A DNA stretch of 64,000 bases, taken from the NCBI GenBank assembly GCA_026770705.1, contig JANJGN010000026.1, forward strand, positions 28,148,001 to 28,212,000, in the 5' to 3' direction. The notes under the pieces are model-generated. The model had not been told where the DNA came from. It saw only the letters and a list, made by a program, of their open reading frames with translations, and did no database searches. Of this stretch, positions 1,945-59,652 are shown in pieces. A program made the position numbers and the translations under genes. Every line of letters starts with the position of its first letter. Positions within the stretch are counted from its first letter, which is position 1. Origin of the DNA: Isurus oxyrinchus. Taxonomy: Eukaryota.

Positions 1945-2857
1945 AACAAAGAACAAAGAACAAAGAAAAGTACAGCACAAGAACAGGTCCTTCGGCCCTC
2001 CAAGCCTGCGCCGATCATATTGCCCATCAACTAAAACATTTTGCACTTCCGGGGTCCGTATCCCTCTATTCCCATCCTATTTATGTATTTGTCAAGCTGC
2101 CTCTTAAACACCACTATCTTACCTGCTTCCACCACCTCCTCTGGCAGCGAATTTCAGACACTCACTACACTCTGCGTAAAAAAACTTGCCCCGCACATCT
2201 CCTCAATAGTTTTCTCCTCTCACCTTAAATCTATGTCCCCTAGTAATTGATTCTTCCAACCTGGGAAAAAGCTTCTGATTATCTACTCTGTCCATGCCAC
2301 TCATAATTTTGTAAACTTCTATCAAGTCGCCCCTCAATCTCCGTCATTCTAGTGAGAACAATCCGAGTTTCTCCAACCTCTCCTCATAGCTAATAACCTC
2401 CAGACCAGGCAGAATCCTGGTAAATCTCTGCACCCTCTCCAACGCCTCCATATCTTTCTGATAATGTGGTGACCAGAATTGCACACAATATTCCAAGTGT
2501 GGCCTAACCAAGGTTCTATACAGCTGCAGCATGATTTCCCAGCTTTTATATTCAATACCTCTGCCAATGAATGCAAGCATGCCATATGCCTTCCTGACTA
2601 CCTTATCTACCTGCTTTGCCACTTTCAGTGACCTGTGGACCTATACACCCAGATCCCTCTGCCCATCGATGCACTTAAGGGTTCTGCTATTTACTGTATA
2701 ATTCCTGCCTGCATTAGACCTTCCAAAATGCATTACCTCACATTTGTCCAGATTAAACTCCATCTGCCATTTCTCCGCTCAAGTCTCCAACCGATCTATA
2801 TCCCATTGTATCCTTTGACAATCCTCTTCACTATCTGCAACTCCTCCAACCTTAGTG
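1945..2857 (-). mobile_element. 5'-truncated CR1 LINE (RT C-terminus, 3' UTR, repeat tail)
   Basis: YRTLVRPHLEYCVQFWSPHY...LEKLGLFSLE; (TTCTTTG)n tail at about 1945-1970. Confidence 0.9.
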
Positions 2858-8964: not shown

Positions 8965-8973
8965 TCACTTGAT
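8965..8973 (-). CDS. IGHM: IgM TM2 exon (IK-stop)
   Basis: Polypyrimidine tract and ttttcag|ATC AAG TGA, 138 bp after TM1; candidate AATAAA at 8543-8548 and 8507-8512. Confidence 0.88.
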   Translation of the reverse strand: MK

Positions 8974-9111: not shown

Positions 9112-9239
9112 CTTCACCAGAGTGACGGCAGTGCTGTAGAAAATGCTCAGGAAGAACAGGATGATGAATGTGGAAGCGGTTGTCCAGATGTTGCCGTTAT
9201 CATCCTCAGAGTCTTCAATCCAGATGCCATCTTTGGAAT
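9112..9239 (-). CDS. IGHM: IgM TM1 exon
   Basis: cgtag acceptor, gtgaga donor, 128 nt; [43 protein letters not shown] (conserved antigen-receptor TM motif). Confidence 0.95.
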
Positions 9240-9739
9240 CTACGAGGATATAGCCGATGAAATACATTTAGATTGTTTATTAGTCTAGGATATCTTTTTC
9301 AATATTCTCTTTACTCTTTTCTAAGTTATTAATGTATTCTCTAATTTAATGTTCAATGTCTATATGCGGTTAAGTTCGTGAATCTCAGTAGCCTATCTCT
9401 GTAACTATCTCTCTTTTACATTCCTCGTACAGCCCATGTCGGAAAATGTGGCAACTTTTCTTCAGCATCAGTTTATTTTTGAACAATTTCGTATAATCTG
9501 TTATTGGGGAATATTATGATGGATATCGAGAGAGATTCACTGAGCTACTTATTTGGAAACAGTGAACGTTGCTTTTTAAAAGCACGGATGTGAGTTCCCA
9601 TCTTGTTTGTCTATTTGTGATGGGAATGTTTGGTGCGTCATTAACTTAAATCAGTTTCTCAGTAAGAGCACTGTTTCAGTGTGTTTATGGGGTCATTATG
9701 TAATCGAGGCAATTGCCAGGGGATATTGTTTATATATAT

Positions 9740-10170
9740 TTTTCTCAACTATTTCTATTATTATTATTATTTAAATTTATTTCCATTCATTGTTTTATCT
9801 CTACCTTTTAGCCTATTTTGATCTGTCCTCCCACAGCCTACTAGGGCCACCTGTCACTTGCTCATCCTGCTTTCTACCCTTAATGTCATTATTAGCACCT
9901 CTTTTAACCAGTATCACCACCATCAACACCCTTCGACCTTTTGTTTATGACATCTTTCGCAATCTCTCCTTTGCCTCTACCTATCACTGGCCTTCTATCC
10001 AGCTTCACCTGTCCCACCCCACTTAAACATTATATATTTCACCACATTTTTACTTCTCTTTCATTCTGAAGAAGAGTCATTCGGACTGAAAACGTTAACT
10101 CTGTCTTTCTCTCCACAGATGGTATCAGACTTGCTGAGCTTTTCCAGCAATTTTTGTTTTTATTCTGAAG
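9740..10170 (+). mobile_element. Penelope-like terminal-repeat fragment in the Cmu4-TM1 intron
   Basis: Similar to 45850-46330; ends with CTGAAGAAGAGTCATTCGGACTGAAAACGTTAAC...CCACAGATG. Confidence 0.7.
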
Positions 10171-10229: not shown

Positions 10230-10585
10230 ATGTGTGCTTTTTGTGTTCTCACATGTATGAGTATGTTTGTGTCAACATGTGTGTCTGTTAATTTGTTAGT
10301 TTGTTCTTCTGTGTTTGCGTGTCTGGGTGTCATCTGCTCATGTGTGTGCATGTGCTAAGGTGTGCCCATGCATTTGTTTTAATGTGGTTGACAGTATGTG
10401 TCTTTATGTCTGTATTTCTGTCATTATGAACGTGTGATAATGCATATGCAAATAATTACATTTGTGCTTTATGCCCTCGTATGAGTCTGCTTGTCTGGTT
10501 TTATCTGTGTGTGTGTGATTGTGTATATGTGTGTGAGTGTGTGTGCGTATTTGCGTGTGCATGATTGTTAACATGTGTGCATCTG

Positions 10586-10616
<31 letters not shown>

Positions 10617-10910
10617 GTGTGATTGTGCGCATGTGTATGTGCTTATGTGATTGTGCGCATGTGTGTGTGCCTGTGTGTTTGTGCATCTGTGCCCATGTGT
10701 TTGTGTGTGTATGTGATTGTGTGTGTGTATTTGTGTAAGTGTGTGATTGTGTGTGTGTGTGCCTGTGCGTGTTTGTGTGTGTGTTTGTGTGGATGTGTGC
10801 CTGTGTGGGTACCTGTGCCTGTGTGTGTGCATGTCTGTGCCTAGGTATCTGTGAGTGAGTGGCTGTGCCTAGGTATGTGTGTGTGTCCATTTTTGTCAGC
10901 TGTGTGTACT
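10230..10910. repeat. Degenerate (TG)n microsatellite tract
   Basis: About 0.7 kb of alternating TG; source of the HT-rich and CV-rich ORFs. Confidence 0.95.
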
Positions 10911-11309: not shown

Positions 11310-11730
11310 TTCCCTTCCAGATTCTCTGCTCGGGGACTGAGAGTCCAGTGAGTTAATAGTTTCCCTCCCTGTGGTCGGCTAAGCAATTTCCCTTTCGGTT
11401 TTGTCTGCTGAGAAGGTGGAGACACAGTGGGATAACGAATGACCTTCCTCGTCTTTTTGTTTAGCAAGTGGAGGTAAAATTGGATAACAATTTTCCTTTC
11501 AGTTTTCTCTGTTGAGGAAGTGGGGGTACAGTGGGTTAACAATTTCCCTTCCCCTCTCTCTGTTGGGGAAGTGAGGGTACAGTGTGTTAACAATTTCCCC
11601 TCCCCCTCTCTCTGTTGGGGAAGTTGGAGTACAATGGGTTAACAATTTCCCTATCCCCTCTCTCTTTTGGGGAAATGGGGGTACAGTGGGTTAACAATCT
11701 CCTTTCTCCTCTCTCTGCTGGGGAGTTGTT
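11310..11730. repeat. ~52-bp minisatellite (about 7-8 units)
   Basis: GGGTACAGTGGGTTAACAATTTCCC...CTCTCTGTTGGGGAAGT recurs at about 11523, 11575, 11627 and 11680. Confidence 0.85.
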
Positions 11731-12161: not shown

Positions 12162-12553
12162 TCATTGACATGAATTAACGGTGTCCATCAGTGCAAGGGA
12201 AATATTCACAAAACTCGGTTTACCGCTGGATTTATTAACCGTTCTGTTGATGATCTTCAAGGGGATCGCTTCATGTCCCACCACACAGGAGTAAGAAGCG
12301 CCGCTGGCCCACTCCTCTGCTGCAATGGATAACAGGCTGTACATGAAGAAGGAGCGATTGCCGTTCTCCGCCACCACCTCAGTGTTCTTGTAATTCCCGG
12401 GATTCACCGTCTTGTCATTGACGGTCCACTTGACGAAGATCTCTCGCGGGGAGAAACCTCTCACTAAGCAGCTCAAGGAGATGAATCTCTGAGCGGAGAC
12501 ATCTTCTGCCGAGGGCAGGAGGACAGACACGGACGGTTCCCGCGGGTCTTTAA
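12162..12553 (-). CDS. IGHM: IgM Cmu4 exon with contiguous secretory tailpiece
   Basis: [37 protein letters not shown]...[16 protein letters not shown]; tail [20 protein letters not shown] has the NIS sequon and penultimate Cys; internal donor G|GTAAA after 12224 for the membrane form. Confidence 0.97.
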
Positions 12554-13262: not shown

Positions 13263-13571
13263 CTGGTTCCTTGTGGATAGAACTTCTCAAAGGAGTCGGC
13301 AGATCCTGATGGCTCACCACGCAGTAGAACTCAGCCCCACTCAGCCAGGCTTGTGTCGAGATGTTTACGTTGCTGACCACGCTGTTGTGATCCTCTCCCG
13401 GTTGGACGGCAATCTCTGATTTCAAAGGCTTCTTTTCTTGGGTCCAGGACACGAGGACTCCATAAGGGGCATTAGAAACGATGCAGGTTAATGTCACCGT
13501 CGCCTCCAGTAAGACCTGTTCTATTGGCGGTGGCAGTAGAGTAATTGTGGGATCGCTGCATTGGGAATGTT
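13263..13571 (-). CDS. IGHM: IgM Cmu3 exon
   Basis: 309 nt phase 1-1; [21 protein letters not shown]...VSWTQ...[20 protein letters not shown]. Confidence 0.96.
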
Positions 13572-13979: not shown

Positions 13980-14297
13980 CCTCACACTTGGTGGCGTTTC
14001 GACTTTGGGTGATCCCTTGATGAGTGACCTGACAGGTATAGACCGCGTCGGTGAACCATTCCCCAGCGGAGACTTTCAGCCGACTGGTCGCCGAGAAGTT
14101 CCCGTTCACTTCAAAGGCGGGAGAGGTGACAATTCCTGAATCCATGGGTTGTCCATTCTTCAGCCACTTCACGGCCATTGAATTTGGTCGGAAATTGATG
14201 ATTGAACAGACGGCTGTTGCAAATTTGTTGGTTGTGATTTCTTCCCTGGAACTCACGGTGAGGAGAACAGTTGGAGGGAAGATGTCAATTGGAGAAC
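13980..14297 (-). CDS. IGHM: IgM Cmu2 exon
   Basis: 318 nt phase 1-1; [14 protein letters not shown]...[12 protein letters not shown]...KWLKNGQP...[12 protein letters not shown]...EW...YTCQVTH. Confidence 0.96.
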
Positions 14298-14509: not shown

Positions 14510-14806
14510 ATTGCATTCCAATGCTCTTGTCTGAGCCGCTGTATTGAACCTCACACTTGATTTTGCTGCAATCCCCCTCTGACTCGGTGATGGTTAATTG
14601 GCTGCTCAGGGTATAGGTTCCCCTCTGGTTTCTCACCGACGGGTAAGTCTTAAATCCAGTGGTGATTGGCTGCCCATCTTTCTTCCAGGTCAGGCTGGTG
14701 ATTTCCGGGGAGTAATCCATCGCCAAACAGCCGTAGGTGACGGAACCATCGGGGTTGTGTTGCTGACAAGAGACCAGGCTATAGAGAGTGGGCGAAGATG
14801 GTGTCG
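14510..14806 (-). CDS. IGHM: IgM Cmu1 exon
   Basis: ttcccag acceptor, gtaagt donor, 297 nt phase 1-1; [14 protein letters not shown]...[21 protein letters not shown]...YTLSSQLTI...CEV. Confidence 0.96.
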
Positions 14807-15745: not shown

Positions 15746-18700
15746 AAGATACAGGCTAATTTCTTACTCCACACTGTCCAACCAAATAGGTCAAGGACTG
15801 CAACAGCACGGATTAAAATAGGATAAAACTCTCTCTGCATTGCCAAACCGAGCACTCCCAAGACACATACATCATTGGTTTAAAATCGACCAAATCTCCT
15901 TCGACAGTCTGTCTGTCGTTTTTGAATTGTCCTTACTGACTATCATAATGGGTTGGGTTTCTGAGGCGCCTGGTCAAAAAGTCAAACTTTCACATTTCTC
16001 ACAGATACAAGTTTTTTGAAGAAATACATCAAATTGCAATTCTTGAAATCCAGGAGAGTGAAGCAGAAGGTTAATAACCAGTCAGGAAGATTCCTAGTCC
16101 CAGCACAGTGACCACGCGCACAGAAACGGAACAGACACAAATGGTGCAACAATCGAGTTCCCAGCAGATAGATCTGTTCAATCTGTCCCTTTCATTCAAG
16201 CTGCTTAATTCCAATTGATCAATGGTCAACTTACTACAATTATTCTATAACTTCTTTGAAATTAATCTGATTTTCATTTCAAAATTCTCTTTTAAGTCCA
16301 TCTAATTCTCCCTGATCTGTCTCAAATCTCCAAATAACTTAGGATTTAAGTTACCCTGAAAATGAGCACAGCAAAAATTACAGGTTCAGGATAATTTGGT
16401 GTCTGTAACAGAGACTCAATGACAGGGTAAGAATGAAACAAATCAGGAAACATTCACATTGAAAACCGATTACCCGCTGATTTGATTTGATTTTAGATAT
16501 GAATAGAACCAATAAAAACATCGAGGCTAAACACCTTATCGAGCTGAGCACAGCTGAGTAAGAAAAGTATTCTTTTCTAAATTAATTTTGGATACAATTA
16601 AAAATTCTCTCCACTGAGATTTTGCACTCACTATAATGACCAGTATACTATTTAATTGTTGGAGCACATTTATGTTGAAGTAATTATCACTAATATTATA
16701 TTGTAAGCTAATTATCTTGTTATTGTCAATTCATTTTCTTGTCAGCTGATTTCTACTCTATAATATTAAAAATGGTTTTCAAAAATTGAAAACTTGTTTC
16801 TCCCTGGGACTTTGTGAAATAATTGGGGTTTATTTAAATCAACCTGACACTGAAACAATGTTAAACAATAAATTTCAAATTGCTAGATGGTAACAATCAG
16901 GCAATTTTATTTAAATCTAAGCACGATTTACTATTTTGCTTTTACTTCTACTGCTCTATTTTAACCAACAATATTGTAAGCTATGCGTGTTTCTGAAGGC
17001 ATTGGGAAATCATAAATTCCATCTATTCTCATCGAGTAATTCACAGGGCGAATTCATCAGTGGAATATTTGAAATACTTTCAAATCTGGCCAGGGTCACA
17101 TCGCATTAAGTGTCTATGAGCTGTAACATCATCTGTTTGCTAAAGGAAACTTGTCTTAACTCCAAACTATATGTAAAAAAAATGTTCCTGGCAGTTCCTT
17201 ATTATCAATAAAATTGCTTCCTAGATAACAATCTCTATTCTTTAATTTTTACATATATTGTTCATTGAAATAAGATCCAAATTGATCAATATAAAACTTG
17301 ATGAGAACAATTCATTCAGATCATCTGTGCCACTGAAATATAATCAGCAAATTGAACCGAGATTTTGTTCTTCAATTTAATATTTAATAAGAATTAAGCA
17401 TGAATCTCAGATATAATCTGTTCTCCTACAATCCTATCCTGTGTACAGCACAGCTATGGGAGACAGGATGTTGTTATTGAATTCAAAACTCACATTAATG
17501 TTTGCAATTAAATTAATCTGTTCTAATTTCAACCTTTTCCTTGTCAATCACTATTCATATGCAGTCTGCACCTTCTTACAGTTAAAAAAATGTAAGAACA
17601 ATTCATTTATTGCCAGCGAATTCCACCCCCCCGAAAACTGTTTAAGATTAGATTAGTGACAATTGTCTCACTATCCAAATCCCAATAACATTGAAGGAAT
17701 AATATGGTTACAGCTGCACAGAAAGAATGTAATAACCAGATAGACATATTGCCAAACTGAAATGTCAAACTCCTTTTTAAGTCAATGCAAACGTTATCAG
17801 GGATATAAAAGAATAATTCAAAATCCCTTGTGAAATTGACCAAATCTTTAGAATCAGTATATTCTTATTGAAATTTTTTCATGCATAATCACAAAATATT
17901 TCTAGCCTAAAAACTTTCCCGATCATGTTAATTGTGCACAGTGCACAACAAAATTATAAAAGGTGATTAATGATCAATTATGTTAATATGAAATCTGTTC
18001 AGCCAATATGGAGAAATATTACAACATTATAATTGTTTGAATTGTATTAATTTTACTCTACAACTTGAAAATTAGTTAATTGTATAGTTTCTGATTGCAG
18101 TAACGAATTATGTTTTGAATGAGGATCATAATCCATGGTTTAGTTTAATCTGCAATTATCACTTAAAATTGAGACAAAATGTTCTAACACATCTTTCAAC
18201 GCTTTTTTCCCCATTCCTGAAACCTGTCTGTTTTCTGCCTACAATCGCGCTTCAAGCAGATACAAACGCATAGACTGTTTCCATTCAATCACAAAACGTG
18301 CAACTGCTCAATATCACCGAGTTTAAACAATGCAGAACCGCCAAGCCGTTTCACAAATTCTACTTATTCAAAGCCACCCAGACACCCAATATCCTCGGGA
18401 GAAAAACACCAAATCACATCACTGAGGGGCTGAAACCCGTTTCATGGAGAAGCAGCTCAATTGTACAAACACTTCCAACAGAATCCAATGTAACATTGCA
18501 AGAAAATCTCAATATTGAATCCAGGCAACACGCTCGTCACTAAATAAATGAATAATTAAACTAAACAGAAATATGGAATAATATCAACAGCATTGTGGGT
18601 AGGCGGAACATGTTCAATAAATTAATATTGAAACTTAAGCATATTTTGTCAATTTTGGGTTTGATTTCAAACCTATTTAAACCCTTGTGCAACAGATGGT

Positions 18701-19045
18701 AAAACCCGCAGCCATTAGATGTCACCGAGATTAAACATTGCAGAAACGTCAAACTGTTTTAACAAACATTAGATATTTCAAGTCGCCCGGCCACACATTA
18801 TCCTCAGCAGATAAACACCAAATCACAACAACCAGGGACCGAATCCCTCAGCAGCACTTTTTGTCAAGACACAGCCGAATTATATAATTCAATTTAAGCA
18901 GAATCACATGAAACATTGTAAAAACATTCTGCATACAGAATCCACCAAACCCACGTTTCAGTGAACGAATGAATTATTAAAATAGACAAAAATATAAAAC
19001 ATAGACTCAAGTAATACAAACAATAAATAAACGTGTGGTTCTTAC

Positions 19046-19093
19046 CTGCAGTCACCGTCACCATGGTCCCTTGTCCCCAGTAGTCAAAATAAT
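19046..19093 (-). CDS. IGHJ: JH segment
   Basis: YFDYWGQGTMVTVTA with the WGxG motif, followed by a G|GTAAG donor. Confidence 0.97.
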
Positions 19094-19132
19094 CACAGTG
19101 TTACATTCCCTAGGCTGTGCCAAACAATAACT
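19094..19132 (-). other. JH 5' RSS, 23-bp spacer
   Basis: Plus strand reads CACAGTG (19094-19100), 23 nt, ACAATAACT (19124-19132). Confidence 0.92.
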
Positions 19133-19460
19133 GTCCCTGCACGAAAAAGACAGAATCTAACATTACTTTAAATATTCATAAGTCAGAGGCAAAGCAAGGT
19201 CACGGTGAATCTTCACGAAATTATATTTGCGTTTGTAGATATCTTTAGGTATTCATCAATGATCCTCATGTTTAATAATTCACCAAGTAACACATGAACA
19301 TGTTATTGAAATCACCAACTGATGAATGCATAATTATCACAGCTTTTCCATCTTAAACTATGTTTTTTGGGCAGTTCTGGACATAAATAATGCTTCACAG
19401 TAAATATAGCAGGATTGTAAAAGCGAGCACTGACCCAGGCAGACACAATTAGTGCTGAGG

Positions 19461-19488
19461 GGTTTTTGTATTGACAGTAAATGCTGTG
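19461..19488 (-). other. D 3' RSS, 12-bp spacer
   Basis: CACAGCA, TTTACTGTCAAT (12 nt), ACAAAAACC. Confidence 0.95.
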
Positions 19489-19513
19489 CCATCCCAGTTA
19501 TACCCCGTAGTAT
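19489..19513 (-). CDS. IGHD: Single 25-nt DH segment, probably germline-fused D1+D2
   Basis: ATACTACGGGGTATAACTGGGATGG between two 12-RSS; no other credible RSS found between V and J. Confidence 0.9.
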
Positions 19514-19541
19514 CACAGTGAAATACACCCGCACAAAAACT
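19514..19541 (-). other. D 5' RSS, 12-bp spacer
   Basis: AGTTTTTGT, GCGGGTGTATTT (12 nt), CACTGTG on the minus strand. Confidence 0.95.
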
Positions 19542-19911
19542 GCACACACTCTCTGTTCAGCGCTGCCTCTCAATATTCACTTCAAATAGACGTTTAATTC
19601 TGATCTAGAAGTAGAATTCATGCAGCAGTTTACAAAATTGAACGAAAAGAGACCTCCTCCAAGTATCAGATATATTAAAATGAACATTATCTCCAGGTCT
19701 GTAATTGCGGAAACAATTAACAGTAAATATCAACACAGCCAAAAGCTCAGCTCATTACATCGACTGATTTGCTAGTTTTACTGTTAAATTTGCTGTGCTA
19801 CTTATGTCAGGAGCTGCTTGTTGCCTGGTCCTGATCATTACAGTTAATGTTACATTTAAAACAAGTGCTGACCGTCAGATTATGATGGAAGTTGTTGAGT
19901 TCCTCTCGATC

Positions 19912-19950
19912 TGTTTTTGTTCAGGCCCAGCCCTGGTTCCTCTCGCTGTG
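19912..19950 (-). other. VH 3' RSS, 23-bp spacer
   Basis: CACAGCG, 23 nt, ACAAAAACA directly after the V coding end. Confidence 0.95.
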
Positions 19951-20256
19951 AGTGTTTTGCACAGTAGTAGATGGCTGTGTCTTCAGTCTTCAGGCTCGTC
20001 ATGTCCAAGGAGAAGATGTTCCTTGAAGTGTCTTTGGACGCAGTAAATCGATTCTTAATTCCTGGAGCGAAGTAGCTGCTGGATGAAGTATGGTAATAAA
20101 TCAACAACTCCAGCGCCTGTCCGGGAACCTGTCGGATCCAGCCCATGTAGTAACTGCCAAGATTGAACCCGCTGGTTTTACAGGTCAGTCTCAGGGTGCC
20201 TCCGGGACGCCCGGTCTCTGCCTCCGGCTGAGTTAACACAACATCCGACTGGGCAC
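19951..20256 (-). CDS. IGHV: Unrearranged VH segment (elasmobranch IgM type)
   Basis: ttttacag acceptor; (R)[46 protein letters not shown]...[32 protein letters not shown]; both Cys and the core Trp present, no stops. Confidence 0.97.
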
Positions 20257-20385
20257 CTGTAAAAAATATATCAAAAACCCCGAGGATTAATCCTGGTGAA
20301 ATGATTCCTGACTCTGTCACATTCCAGAGAGAGACTAACACTGAGACAGTCACAATGAGAGACTTGGAGAATAAAAACTACTCAC

Positions 20386-20431
20386 GGGATAAGAAAGTCA
20401 GCAACAAACTGAGAGAAATCGCCGACCTCAT
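20386..20431 (-). CDS. IGHV: IgM VH leader exon
   Basis: ATG at 20431 reads MRSAISLSLLLTFLS plus 1 nt, then a GTGAGT donor; hydrophobic signal peptide; 129-bp phase-1 intron to the V exon. Confidence 0.95.
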
Positions 20432-20521
20432 CCTTCTGGTCCTTCGCGGAAAATGGTTCTGTCCAGAACTCAGTGAACAAATCAGCTCCCGGACTGTTGG
20501 ATTCCGGTCCCAGTGAGCGGC

Positions 20522-20605
20522 ATTTAAATACCCGGCAGAAGGGGGCGGCTTTCCAGGCGCCGCCTGTTGATTCCCTGGTGGAGGCGGCGACTGGATCCAC
20601 GCCCC
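20522..20605 (-). promoter_or_regulatory. VH promoter (TATA-like element plus GC/CACC boxes)
   Basis: TATTTAAAT at 20522-20530, about 90 nt upstream of the ATG; GGGGCGG 20542-20548 and CCACGCCCC 20597-20605 in a local GC-rich patch. Confidence 0.65.
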
Positions 20606-23850: not shown

Positions 23851-26480
23851 GCCTTTACGACCATCTTCTTCTCTGCTGAAAGATAAGATCCGTTCCACAG
23901 GAGGTGAATAATGCAAAAATCACCACACTATATGAAAACAAAGCCGACAGGTGAGACTGCAACAACTACGGGGATATCTCACTCATAGAGTCACGGGGAA
24001 GGCCTTTGCTTGGGTCATGCTTTAAGGACTTCATCTGGTTGCAGGCTGAAGCACATGTGATGTTTTTATTGGAAGCTATACTCTGGACATGATTTGCTCC
24101 ACACACTGGACACCATCAGCAGAACAGGACTCTACAAAGTTTTTGGGAAAATTGGCTGTTCACCAAAGCGCCTCAGTCTCATTCACTCCTTCCATGACAA
24201 CATTCACTGTACTGTACAGATTGATGATTCCACTTCCGACAGATTCAGAGTGAAGAATGGAGTGAAACAGACCTGTGTCCAATCCCCACTCTGTTGGGCA
24301 CCTTCTCAATGCTGCTGATCTTTGTCTTCCCTGTAAATATGGAAGGAGTTGACTTACGCTCGATCAGACCACAAGCTCCACAATCTATAAGACTGAAAAC
24401 GAAAACATAAACACATTGAATCTTGATCAGAGAATTCCTCCACGCTGATAACCCTGTCATCAAAATGGAAACTCATCCACAAAGACTGATGAACTGATTG
24501 TCCCGTGCCTGTAACCTGTTCCCCCTGACTATAACCATGGAGAAAACCGTGGTCATGGGATAAGGTGTTGCATTTCCATCATTGATCACACTAAATAACA
24601 AACGGATGGAAGTGAATTCTGCTGCCTGGGTTCCATGGTGATAGGCAGCCTGTTCCTTGCTGCAGAACCTGATACTCGTATGGGGAAAGCAGCTGCCACC
24701 TTTGGCTGACTCATGAAATGCCCCTGGAATAACATCAGATATAAAAACAAAAAAGTGCGGATGCTGGAAATCCAAAACACAAAATAAAAAATACCTGGAA
24801 AAACTCAGCAGGTCCGGCAACATTGGCGGAGAAGAGTACAGTTGATGTTTCGAGTCCTCATGACCCTTCAACAGAACTAAGTAAAAATAAGAGAGGGGTG
24901 AAATATAAGCTGGTTTAAAGAGTGGGGGTGGGTGGTGGGGCAAAGGTGGGGCGGGGTGGTGGTTGTTGGGACAAGCAAGCAGTGATAGGAGGAGATAACC
25001 AAAAGATGTCACCGACAAAAGAACAAAGAGGTGTTGAAGGTCGTGATGTTATCTAAAAGAATGTGCTAATTATGAATGAGCGGTCACCCACTCTGCGTTT
25101 GGTCTCTCCGCTTTGCAGAACACCTTTGGTCTGTTGGCAAGCATAACCTAGACCTTCCTGTCACTTGCCATTTTAACACTCCACCCTGCTCTCTTGCCCA
25201 CATGTCCGTCCTTGGCTTGCTGCATTGTTCCAGTGAAGCTCAACACAAACTGGAGGAACAGCACCTCATCTTCTAACTTGGAACTTTACAGCCTTCCGGA
25301 CTGCATATTGAATTCAACAGTTTTAGATCTTAAACTCCCTCCTCCATCCCCACCCCCTTTCCGTTTCTTCCCCCTCCTCTTTGTTTTTTCCAATAATTTA
25401 TATAGATTTTTCTTTTCCCACCTATTTCCATTATTTTTAATGTATTCCACCAATAATTTATCTACACCTTTTATGCCCTTTTAGTCTTATTTCATCCCAC
25501 CCCCATTAAAGCTACCTTGCTTGTCCTGCCATCCATTCTTAATTAGCACATTCTTTTAGATAATATCACCACCTTCAATACCTCTTTGTTCTTTTGTCTG
25601 TGACATCTTTTGGTTATCTCCTTCTATCACTGCTTGCTTGTCCCAACAACCACCCACCTCTCTTTCCCCCACCCCCTTAAACCAGCTTATATTTCACCCC
25701 TCTCCTATTTTTACTTTGTTCTGTTGAAGGGTCATGAGGACGCGAAATGTCAACTGTACTCTTCTCCGCCGATGCTGCCAGACCTGCTGAGTTTTTCCAG
25801 GTAGTTTTTATTTTTTGTCCTGGAATAACATCAATCTGGCCCTTAGGACCAAGCTGATCGTTTATAAGGCCTGCGTTCTCAGCACCTTTCTCTATGGCTG
25901 TGAAACATGGGCGAATTACAGTTATCAAGAAAAGAAGCTCCACAAATTCCATCTTCACTGCCTGCTGCGCATTTTGGGTATGTACTGGCTGGATAAAGTC
26001 ATGAATGCAGTGGTACTGTCAAAGGCACAGCTCCCAAAACCGCAGAACTCATCAAACAGAAGCGGTTTTTGTGGTTTGGGAACGTTCACAGGATGGAAGA
26101 TGGTCACATAGACAAGGACTTTCTGTATGGTGAGGGAGCCAGAGGCAGACAACCAGCTCAAAGCTCCGCTTCAAGGATGCTTGAAGTGAAGGCCCTAAAT
26201 ATCGATTATCACAACTGAGTGTAACTAACTGACAACTGAGGAAAATGGCGACACCTCCTGTGGGTTGGCGTGAACCACCACGATGACTAGTGGCTACAGT
26301 GGCTTGGTAATCCACCGGAAAATGGGAAAAAAGAAGCCACAACTACTTTATCTAGCTTCATGTGCAACACTTGTGGCAGAACCTGCCTCACAATAATTGG
26401 CCTCCTTAGCATTCAGCACATCGGAAATGGGTTTGTTTCCATTGTGTGTCTGTGACCTTTCATAGATGGAAGGTTGTCCA
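23850..26480 (+). mobile_element. Decayed RTE-clade LINE RT region, interrupted by a Penelope insert
   Basis: KITTLYENK...DCNNY, LYKVFGKIGCSPK..SLIHSFHD, GVKQ, LRTKLIVYKACVLSTFLYGCETW. Confidence 0.8.
24738..25818. mobile_element. Penelope-like insertion with inverted terminal arms and 15-bp TSD
   Basis: CCTGGAATAACATCA at 24723-24737 and 25819-25833; arms about 24741-25075 and 25535-25815 are inverted; GIY-YIG C-terminus (RFAEHL..PVTCHFN) in the centre. Confidence 0.88.
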
Positions 26481-40576: not shown

Positions 40577-41893
40577 AAAGCAAAATAGTGCGGATGCTCA
40601 AACTCTGAAAGGAAACCATAAAATGCTGGAAAATCACAGCAGGTCTGACAGCACCTGTGGTGAGAGAAGCAGAACTAACTTCCTGAGACCGTACGACCTT
40701 CCTCAGAGCTAAAGAAAAGTCAAAATGTGATGACATTTGCTGCTTAAGCAAGATGGAGCAGGTCAGGCTGGATAGAAGGCAAGCAATAGGCGGGGGTAAG
40801 GTGACACTGACAAAAATATCATAGGCAAAAAGAAAAAGAGAGTGTTAATGGCAGTGGTAAGGACAAAGTAGGTGCTAATGCAGTCATATAGGTAAGAAAG
40901 CAGAATGTATTAACAGCAGAGCCAGAATCAGCACACTGTGAAAGAACAACATGGAACAAGTAACTGATGGCCCTTTTGGGGGTGTGATAGGGGGAAAGGG
41001 CGGTGGTTGTGGATAAACGGTACAAAAAGGAATAAAAAGGGGATAAAAAAGAGGATACAACAATGAATAAATGAATAAGGCTGCAAAGTGCAAAATCGGA
41101 AGATGAGTTTCTGTTCCTCTACTTTGCACTGGGCTTCACTGGGACAATGTAGCAGGTCAAAGAGGGACATGTGGGTATCAGAGAAGGATGGTATATTGAA
41201 ATTGCAAGCGACAGGAAAGTCTAGGTCATGCTTGCAGATAGACTGAAGGTGTTCCACAAAGCGACCTGCAGTGTCCCCAATCTAGTGGAGACTGCATTGG
41301 GAGCAGCGAATGCAGTAGACCAAATTAAAGGAGGTGCAATGAAGCGGTGCTTCACCTGAAATGAATGTTTGGGCCTTTGGATGGTGAGGAGGGAGGAGGT
41401 AAAGGGACAGGTGTTGCATCTTCTCTGATTGTTTGGGAAGGTGCCATGGGAAGGGGATGAGGAGTTGCAGGTGCTGGAGGAGTGGACCAGGGTTTTCCAG
41501 AGGGAACGGTCCCTGTGGAATGCTGACAGGGGTGGGGGTGGGGGTGGAGTGATGAAGGGAAGGTGTGTTTGATGGTAGCATCATGTTGGAGTTAGCGGAA
41601 ATGGTGGAGGATGATCCTTTGAATGCGGGGGTGGTGGGATGAAATGTGAGGAAAAGGGGGAACTTATCATGATTCTGGGAGAGAGAGGGGAATGTGTGAA
41701 AGCAGAGATGCAGGAGATTGGTCGGACATGGTTGAGGGCCCTGTCAACCACAGTGTCTGATAAACCTTGCTTAAGGAAGGAGGAAGGCATTTCAGAAGCA
41801 TCATTTTAGAAAGTGGCATCATCGGAACAGATGTGAAGGAGGCGAACGAAATGAGAGAATGGGATGGCATTTTTCCAGCATTTTCTGTTTTTA
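40577..41893 (-). mobile_element. Penelope-like element fragment inserted in the satellite
   Basis: CTSFNLVYCIRCSQC and EHLQSICKHDLDFPVACNFN GIY-YIG motifs; terminal repeat at 40577-40740. Confidence 0.82.
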
Positions 41894-44620: not shown

Positions 44621-45236
44621 CTGTGATATTATTGTATTAGGCTGCTTCATTCATTACTGTAATCTTCTATGTTTCACCTTATATTATAAAGGGCTTATCC
44701 CATTTATTAATACACTAGACCAAGTCTCAGTTATTACTGCACTATAAAAGGTCTCTGCTAACTGGATAGAGTTGGAGAGAGAGCCAGTTGGATAGGTGGG
44801 TATTAATTTTAAAATGTTATAATATCCTGTCGGTAAAAAGGTTTTGAAAGAATACATTTAGTCTTCTAACTAGCTATTAGATGTTGTGTGAAATTTCTCA
44901 TTACTCTGGTGTGATGTGTATAATGTTTGTGTTGAAATGTTGGGGTGAATCTTGTAGCATTCCCTTCATCAGTGAGGTTGAGGAATAGAAACAAAGATGA
45001 ACCACATTGCACTGCACATTGCACTACTTAGTCACAAACTGCATTGTGTTAGAGATGACTAATTCATACTTGAGTTGATCAGTGGCAATTGCTCACAGTT
45101 TTCTTTAATTTCCAGATATTTTTCACTTTTCAAATCGGAATTTCTGTTTGCTTTTGGTGTGGCCACTGATTGTGAGAGACAGGGTCTGAAGCCGCATCCT
45201 CAGGCAAATGAGAGGACACAGGCTCCTAATAACCAA

Positions 45237-46363
45237 AACAAAAATAAAAATACCTGGAAAAACTCAGCAGGTCTGGCAGCTTCTGCAGAGAGGAACACAA
45301 TTAACGTTTCGAGTCCATATGATTCTTCAACAGAACAAAGTAAAAATAGAAAAGAGGTGAAATGTAAGATGGCTTAAGGGGGTGGGGTGGGGGGGGGGGT
45401 TCGGGGATGGGATAGGTAGAGCTGGTAGAGGGCCAGTGATAGGTGGAGATAGCCAAAAGATGTCATAGACAAAAGGACAAAGAGGTGTTGAAGGTGGTGA
45501 TATTATCTAAGCAATGTGCTAATTAAGGGTACAAAGCAGGACAAGCAAGGTACTGATAGCCCTAGTGGGGTGGGGTAAAGGGAAGGGATCGAAATAGGCT
45601 AAAAGGTAGAGATAAAATAATGGATGGAAGTACATTTAAAAATAATAGAAATAGATGGGAAAAGAAGAATCTATATAAATTATTGTAAAAAAAAGGGGGG
45701 GCATCAGAATGGGAGTGGGGATGGAGGAGAGAGTTCATGATCTAAAATTGTTGAACTTAATATTCAGTCCGGAAGGCTGTAAATTGCGTAGTTGGAAGAA
45801 TATTGAGTTCAACAATTTGAGATAATGAACTCTCTCCTCCATCCCCACCCCCTTTCTGATCCCCCTTTTTTTCCAACAATTTATGTAGATTTTTCTTTTC
45901 CCACCTATTTCCATTATTTTTAAATGTATTTCCATCCATTGTTTTATCTCTACCTTTTAGCCTATTTCGATCCCTTCCCTTCACCCCACCCCCACCAGGG
46001 CTATCTGTACCTTGCTTGTCCTGCTTTCTACCCTTAATTAGCACATTCCTTAGATAATATCACCACCTTCAACACCTCTTTGTCCTTTTTTCTATGACAT
46101 CTTTTGGCAGTCTCCACCTATCACTGGCCCTCTATCCAGCTCTACCTGTCCCACACACACCGCGCCCCCCCCCCCCCCCACCGCTTCAACCAGCTTTTAT
46201 TTCACCTATTTTCTATTTTTACTTATTTCTGTTGAAGAGTCATATGGACTCGAAATGTTAACTGTGTTCCTCTCCACAGATGCTGCCAGACCTACTGAGT
46301 TTTTCCAGATATTTTTATTTTTGTTTTGGATTTCCAGCAATGACAGTTTTTTGCTTTTATTTT
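45237..46363. mobile_element. Penelope-derived fold-back insertion with 16-bp TSD
   Basis: GGCTCCTAATAACCAA at 45221-45236 and 46364-46379; ~530-bp inverted arms (45237-45765 and 45798-46326). Confidence 0.9.
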
Positions 46364-59519: not shown

Positions 59520-59652
59520 NNNNNNNNNNNNNNNNNNNNNNNNNNNNNNNNNNNNNNNNNNNNNNNNNNNNNNNNNNNNNNNNNNNNNNNNNNNNNNNNN
59601 NNNNNNNNNNNNNNNNNNNNNNNNNNNNNNNNNNNNNNNNNNNNNNNNNNNN
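59520..59652. other. Assembly gap (133 N)
   Basis: Run of N directly after a Penelope-derived repeat (59429-59519). Confidence 1.

Follow-up and report, generated by a model that had tools for sequence, protein, structure and literature searches.

Germline joining by RAG is the accepted source of pre-assembled shark antibody genes. For IgM, the forms described as joined in the germ line are VD-J/VDD-J, VD-DJ and VDJ (PMC5192425, PMC4279169; Lewis and Wu commentary, PMC2193153), and Lee et al. 2000 (PMC2193156) concluded that split genes gave rise to the germline-joined ones of sharks through RAG-like activity, with few traces of TdT. In nurse-shark lymphocytes, the joining of D1 to D2 alone is a frequent first step (PMC2435157), and RAG can therefore yield a DD product. 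Outside IgM, the nurse-shark IgNAR type III cluster has a D1 and a D2 that are already joined in germline DNA and a CDR3 that is restricted as a result; spiny dogfish lacks this fusion (PMC4622739), and such events are therefore lineage specific. Elasmobranch IgH clusters have also been reported to show linkage with the TCR alpha/delta region (PMC12227049). A germline V-DD-J cluster of the IgM type is not among the forms given in PMC5192425, PMC4279169 and PMC2193153, and none was described in the literature reached by our search, the coverage of which lay mostly outside subscription journals; within the same coverage, no annotation of catshark IgH D segments was found.

The locus analysed here appears to have just this arrangement. 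The minus strand of the window, by which we mean the whole 64-kb stretch of Isurus oxyrinchus DNA under analysis, carries one complete IgM cluster composed of leader, V, a single D, J, Cmu1-4 with secretory tail, TM1 and TM2 (Table 1). We suggest, with a probability of roughly 85%, that this cluster is an IgM mini-locus whose D1 and D2 became one segment through a RAG-type coding joint made in the germ line.

Table 1. Coordinates of the IgM cluster and its recombination signals within the window, ordered from leader to TM2.
Feature	Position	Strand	Details
Leader exon	20386-20431	minus	ATG 20431-20429; 46 nt; donor GT at 20385; from sequence
VH exon	19951-20256	minus	306 nt, open, ends ...YYCAKH; Pfam V-set E=3.7e-17
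V 23-RSS	19912-19950	minus	CACAGCG, 23-nt spacer, ACAAAAACA; from RSS scan
D 5' 12-RSS	19514-19541	minus	nonamer AGTTTTTGT 19541-19533, spacer 12, heptamer CACTGTG 19520-19514; D1-type side
D	19489-19513	minus	25 nt, ATACTACGGGGTATAACTGGGATGG
D1-like half of D	19502-19513	minus	ATACTACGGGGT; from edit distances
D2-like half of D	19489-19501	minus	ATAACTGGGATGG; from edit distances
D 3' 12-RSS	19461-19488	minus	heptamer CACAGCA 19488-19482, spacer 12, nonamer ACAAAAACC 19469-19461; D2-type side
J 23-RSS	19094-19132	minus	nonamer AGTTATTGT 19132-19124, spacer 23, heptamer CACTGTG 19100-19094; from RSS scan
JH	19046-19093	minus	...YFDYWGQGTMVTVTA; donor GT at 19045; from sequence
Cmu1 exon	14510-14806	minus	297 nt, phase 1; Pfam C1-set E=2.7e-13; AG/GT borders
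Cmu2 exon	13980-14297	minus	318 nt; Pfam C1-set E=1.6e-17; AG/GT borders
Cmu3 exon	13263-13571	minus	309 nt; Pfam C1-set E=1.9e-9; AG/GT borders
Cmu4 exon + secretory tail	12162-12553	minus	Pfam C1-set E=1e-20; from sequence and phase
TM1 exon	9112-9239	minus	from sequence; phase matches internal Cmu4 donor
TM2 exon	8965-8973	minus	ATC AAG TGA; from acceptor and phase

Judged by its coding sequence, the cluster is IgM because it combines four C1-set exons with a mu-type secretory tail, complete with N-glycan site and penultimate Cys, and two TM exons. The Pfam searches behind this assignment were run exon by exon. Every exon is open, bordered by AG/GT and keeps phase 1, and an internal donor in Cmu4, after 12224, gives the membrane form in phase with TM1 and TM2. 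When the VH is compared with those of other sharks, identity is 76% for an Ig heavy chain V region of Heterodontus and 75% for a V of Scyliorhinus torazame. Measured against what defines elasmobranch IgM, the cluster thus presents the leader and a VH with 23-RSS, as well as the four Cmu C1-set exons, the mu tail and the TM exons reached from the internal Cmu4 donor; of the two Ds that belong to the definition, (12)D1(22/23) and (12)D2(12), it presents neither in separate form, and a single 12/12 D is found instead. With exons open and in phase and the outer RSS intact, the locus is otherwise sound, as a first reading made from the sequence only had maintained, and the cluster looks functional.

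Self-comparison revealed no second Ig cluster in the 64-kb window. Near the V promoter, the ATGCAAAT octamer is absent, and a TATA-like TATTTAAAT lies at ~20522-20530. Just downstream of J, the J-Cmu intron holds two copies of a ~270-nt element, 69% alike, at 18311-18574 and 18719-18995. The interval between Cmu4 and TM1 contains a lengthy, impure (TG)n microsatellite as well as a 52-nt tandem repeat in about five copies (10502-10885, 11466-11724). The element at 9729-10167 is a dispersed repeat with further copies at 45234-46328, 40613-40907 and 25397-25815, and an ORF at 2344-2622 (minus strand) appears similar to the C-terminal part of a retrotransposon reverse transcriptase. Positions 59520-59652 are a run of 133 N, representing an assembly gap or masked sequence.

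The arrangement of recombination signals was established by a scan of 18990-20000 on both strands, in which heptamers were allowed up to 2 mismatches with CAC fixed, nonamers up to 3 mismatches, and spacers 11-13 or 21-24 nt. Four canonical RSS were returned (V, D 5', D 3' and J), together with one weak cryptic site inside V FR3; an orphan 22/23-RSS between V and J was found on neither strand of the scanned interval. The sequence-only reading is borne out on each of these points: the single 25-nt D flanked by 12-RSS on both sides is correct in coordinates, in length and in both 12-nt spacers, with 19461-19541 running exactly from nonamer to nonamer of the D block on the minus strand; the distances to V and to J, put at about 400-440 bp, were measured between coding ends as 437 nt (V-D) and 395 nt (D-J); and the orphan signal that it held to be missing is absent from the scan. 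The cryptic site in V FR3 (19973-19979, minus strand) consists of CACAGCC, 12 nt and GCAAAACAC, with 2 and 3 mismatches, and is probably a chance match. Embedded heptamers in V serve V replacement in other species, and the site in FR3 resembles these.

The origin of the single D can be read from comparison with separate Ds. Nurse-shark Group 2 germline D1 and D2 are ATACTACAGTGGGT and ACATACTGGGATAG, respectively (Malecek et al. 2008, Fig. S1, PMC2435157). The window D lies 5 edits from these two segments placed in the order D1+D2 and 12 edits from the reversed order D2+D1, and among 5000 shuffles of the window D none came closer than 8 edits to nurse-shark D1+D2. Set against D1+D2 of paralogous clusters (described below), the distance is 7 edits, a value that no shuffle reached, and reversed orders give 12-13. 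The two halves behave likewise when taken singly, the 5' 12 nt being 2 edits from nurse-shark D1 as opposed to 6 from D2, and the 3' 13 nt being 2 edits from the paralog D2 and 3 from the nurse-shark D2 as opposed to 7-8 from the D1s. The D1-like half has ATACTAC...GGGT in common with the paralog D1 seen in sequencing run X3, and the GGGT end of D1 directly abuts the ATA start of D2 in the window D. By these distances, the 25-nt D is a composite of D1 and D2, in that order, which is the order of parental coding segments expected of a germline-joined gene.

Paralogous clusters were sampled in contigs of three DNA runs (X1, X3, X4) and one RNA-like run (X19), aligned to 18800-20600 at a likeness of at least 80%; about half of X1 and of X4 and about 84% of X3 were read. 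Many paralog contigs match both intersegments at ~85-90%, for example in X3 at 19096-19423 and at 19576-19757. Among the contigs listed, those that reach the D break inside it, at 19494 or at 19507. In X1 and X4, J-side contigs run through the 3' heptamer to 19494 and then continue as AGTATAT CACAGTG AGACACACC; on the coding strand, these loose ends are a separate D2, ATATACTGGATGG, with its own 5' CACTGTG heptamer. In X3, three V-side contigs reach down to 19507, preceded by GTG ACCCACTGCT, and their loose ends amount to a separate D1, ATACTACAGCAGTGGGT, after which a heptamer begins (CAC). The separate D1 and D2 of the X1, X3 and X4 contigs indicate that two-D clusters exist in the same species group, and the split paralogs to be expected beside a germline-joined gene are thereby present. 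The division of the D into ATACTACGGGGT and ATAACTGGGATGG, which the sequence-only reading had proposed, finds its confirmation in two comparisons that are independent of each other, that with the nurse-shark segments and that with the contig breaks, and the scan upholds the accompanying claim that the D1 5' RSS and the D2 3' RSS (CACAGCA) have been retained, both outer 12-RSS being intact.

A further claim, that the joint lacks obvious N additions, stands in part: the junction GGGT/ATA is clean, and freedom from additions follows only if the parental D1 ended in ...ACGGGGT. In the one paralog D1 that was read, the middle of the segment has 5 nt more, with AGCAGT where the window has a single G, which means either that the parental D1 was a shorter variant or that part of the GGGG is a junctional addition after trimming. 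One RNA-like X19 contig has a CDR3 with ACGGGGT followed by unrelated sequence; this match, a weak one of 7 letters, hints that a D1 ending ...ACGGGGT exists elsewhere.

Two contigs from the DNA runs display joints of other kinds. One, a paralogous contig from X1, joins the heptamer of the D 5' 12-RSS (19514) to J (19085), with J trimmed to GACTACTGG and 23 intervening nt unlike either D1 or D2; it has a depth of 92 vs 47 for a unique contig and seems to represent an IgM cluster at another place in the genome that is D-J-joined in the germ line. The other, from X4, joins J (19085) to the 3' end of V (19957) at a depth of 23, like unique sequence, and probably represents a fully joined VDJ paralog in germline DNA.

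The reasoning is at its weakest where it takes the fused D for the germline allele at this very locus, and the arguments for that step are indirect. Exact or near-exact contigs of the locus flank the D (X1 19615-20006, 0 differences; X3 19735-19986, 1; X3 19567-19764, 3) and come from two organism labels and two studies. Among the contigs listed, none spans the D (19482-19520) at exact identity, and at 19445 and 19546 every contig aligned has another letter. The lack of an exact contig across the D among those listed speaks for a somatic D1-D2 join, taken into the assembly from a lymphocyte, or for a mis-assembly, the true germline then being V-D1-D2-J; and V-DD-J is indeed a common intermediate in nurse-shark thymocytes and B cells (PMC2435157). 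We nevertheless regard this explanation as very unlikely. An assembly consensus requires a majority of the reads, which a single lymphocyte clone cannot give; the junction shows no N region, whereas the two somatic V-DD-J joints known from nurse shark in PMC2435157 have gained 6 and 9 nucleotides; and each half of the D has diverged from the canonical Ds that were sampled, an indication of age. Other joined forms, present at depths like that of unique sequence (92 vs 47 in X1 and 23 in X4), were counted in favour of germline joining.

A germline RAG joint, the reading that we prefer, would have started from the D1 3' 22/23-RSS paired with the D2 5' 12-RSS, and a normal RAG-type coding joint in the germ line would have followed. 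The D1-D2 intersegment and both signals would have been lost in the process and the coding ends ligated without detectable loss or addition (...GGGT/ATA...), leaving V(23)-(12)DD(12)-(23)J as the remaining layout. We infer both RAG as the agent and the germ cell as the site. A RAG coding joint between 22/23-RSS and 12-RSS is favoured because the deletion stops at both heptamer borders with both coding ends kept; as traced from short loose ends, it runs from heptamer border to heptamer border and leaves the outer RSS in place. The clean GGGT/ATA joint, moreover, agrees with the low TdT activity in germline-joined shark genes (PMC2193156).

The same borders bear on a deletion made independently of RAG, whether by replication slippage, by NHEJ after a random break or by unequal exchange between the 12-RSSs of D1 and D2, an explanation to which we assign an even smaller chance than to the somatic join. 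The 5' 12-RSSs of D1 and D2 are alike (paralog D2 CACAGTG AGACACACC vs window CACAGTG AAATACACC), which makes recombination between them conceivable, but an exchange between these two signals would leave D2 alone and no composite of D1+D2, and a random deletion must start and stop exactly at two heptamer borders with both complete coding ends retained. The least probable explanation of all, a formal possibility in which the single long D came first and was later split into the D1 and D2 of other clusters, is opposed by D1 and D2 occurring separately, with almost the same cores, in nurse shark and in the same species group, by V-D1-D2-J being the standard elasmobranch IgM cluster in reviews (PMC5192425; PMC2435157) and by the nurse-shark light-chain phylogeny, which indicated that joined genes derive from split ones (PMC2193156).

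Regarding the behaviour of the cluster, V(23)-(12)DD(12)-(23)J obeys the 12/23 rule, and direct joining of V to J would be barred by it. Assembly in lymphocytes should take two joints instead of three, giving a CDR3 that is expected to lack one junction and to have a core encoded in the germ line. Translation of the fused D in three frames gives ILRGITGM, YYGV*LGW and TTGYNWD; the stop of frame 2 arises exactly at the DD joint, and within the fused segment the Tyr-rich frame usual for D1 does not run in phase with the Trp-Asp frame of D2.

The cluster is presumably in use. The RNA-like X19 contigs, being only 90-97% like the window, probably stem from paralogs. In one of them, 20253 is joined to 20383 with an ambiguity of 3 bases, consistent with excision of the leader-V intron 20257-20385. 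Others stop at 19046 (the J donor) and continue in sequence absent from 18800-20600, as would be expected if J is spliced onward. RNA-like contigs of very low depth (0.4-2) are also seen in the paralog V-D intersegment, at 19532-19897, and these could reflect either sterile transcription of a cluster that has not rearranged or DNA carried over into the library.

The importance of a fusion confined to D1 and D2 lies in the combination it would bring about, with the capacity for rearrangement kept, one junction lost and a fixed CDR3 core gained. The fused D would also provide a clean and datable footprint of RAG activity in a germ cell, involving a joint without N nucleotides between parental segments that are known. 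If several V-DD-J clusters exist, the question of a single or a repeated event, as well as that of usage at different life stages, becomes testable. One could go further and propose that V-DD-J clusters constitute a small conserved IgM subfamily kept by selection, with a semi-hard-wired CDR3 core used early in life, as the IgM counterpart of IgNAR type III and IgM1gj. We hold this proposal to be doubtful; should it be true, it would present a natural example of the bony-vertebrate-like 23/12-12/23 layout with one D arising from a two-D cluster in one RAG step.

Lastly, comparison with known systems places the window cluster as a further layout within known shark pre-joining that involves no new mechanism. 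The RSS logic is the same as in the tetrapod IgH, V(23)-(12)D(12)-(23)J, with its obligatory two-step assembly of V, D and J, and the cluster shows in a living species that the two-D shark layout can turn, in one step, into a layout with one D and 12/12 signals, like that of the heavy-chain loci of tetrapods. The likeness is a convergence of layout only, however, since the window holds a mini-locus of single V, D and J and not a translocon of many segments. The somatic V-DD-J intermediate of the nurse shark is identical in configuration (PMC2435157), but it occurs in thymocytes and B cells with N/P nucleotides at the joint, whereas the window sequence comes from a genome assembly and its joint is clean. 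With the partly or fully joined IgM genes known from horned shark, nurse shark and skates (VD-J/VDD-J, VD-DJ, VDJ, IgM1gj), the cluster shares its class of event, a joining that was directed by RSS and became fixed in the germ line, in a mini-locus of the V-D1-D2-J-C type. Those forms all involve V or J, whereas here the joint is between D and D only; V and J are free, with intact RSS, so that two junctions remain at which rearrangement can take place and diversity arise. The closest precedent of the fused IgM D is the nurse-shark IgNAR type III cluster. In both, neighbouring D1 and D2 of an Ig mini-locus have been pre-joined, with the effect that one rearrangement step is gone and CDR3 diversity is restricted. 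The precedent differs in its isotype, IgNAR, with three Ds and no light chain, whereas the window cluster is IgM and has gone from two Ds to one.
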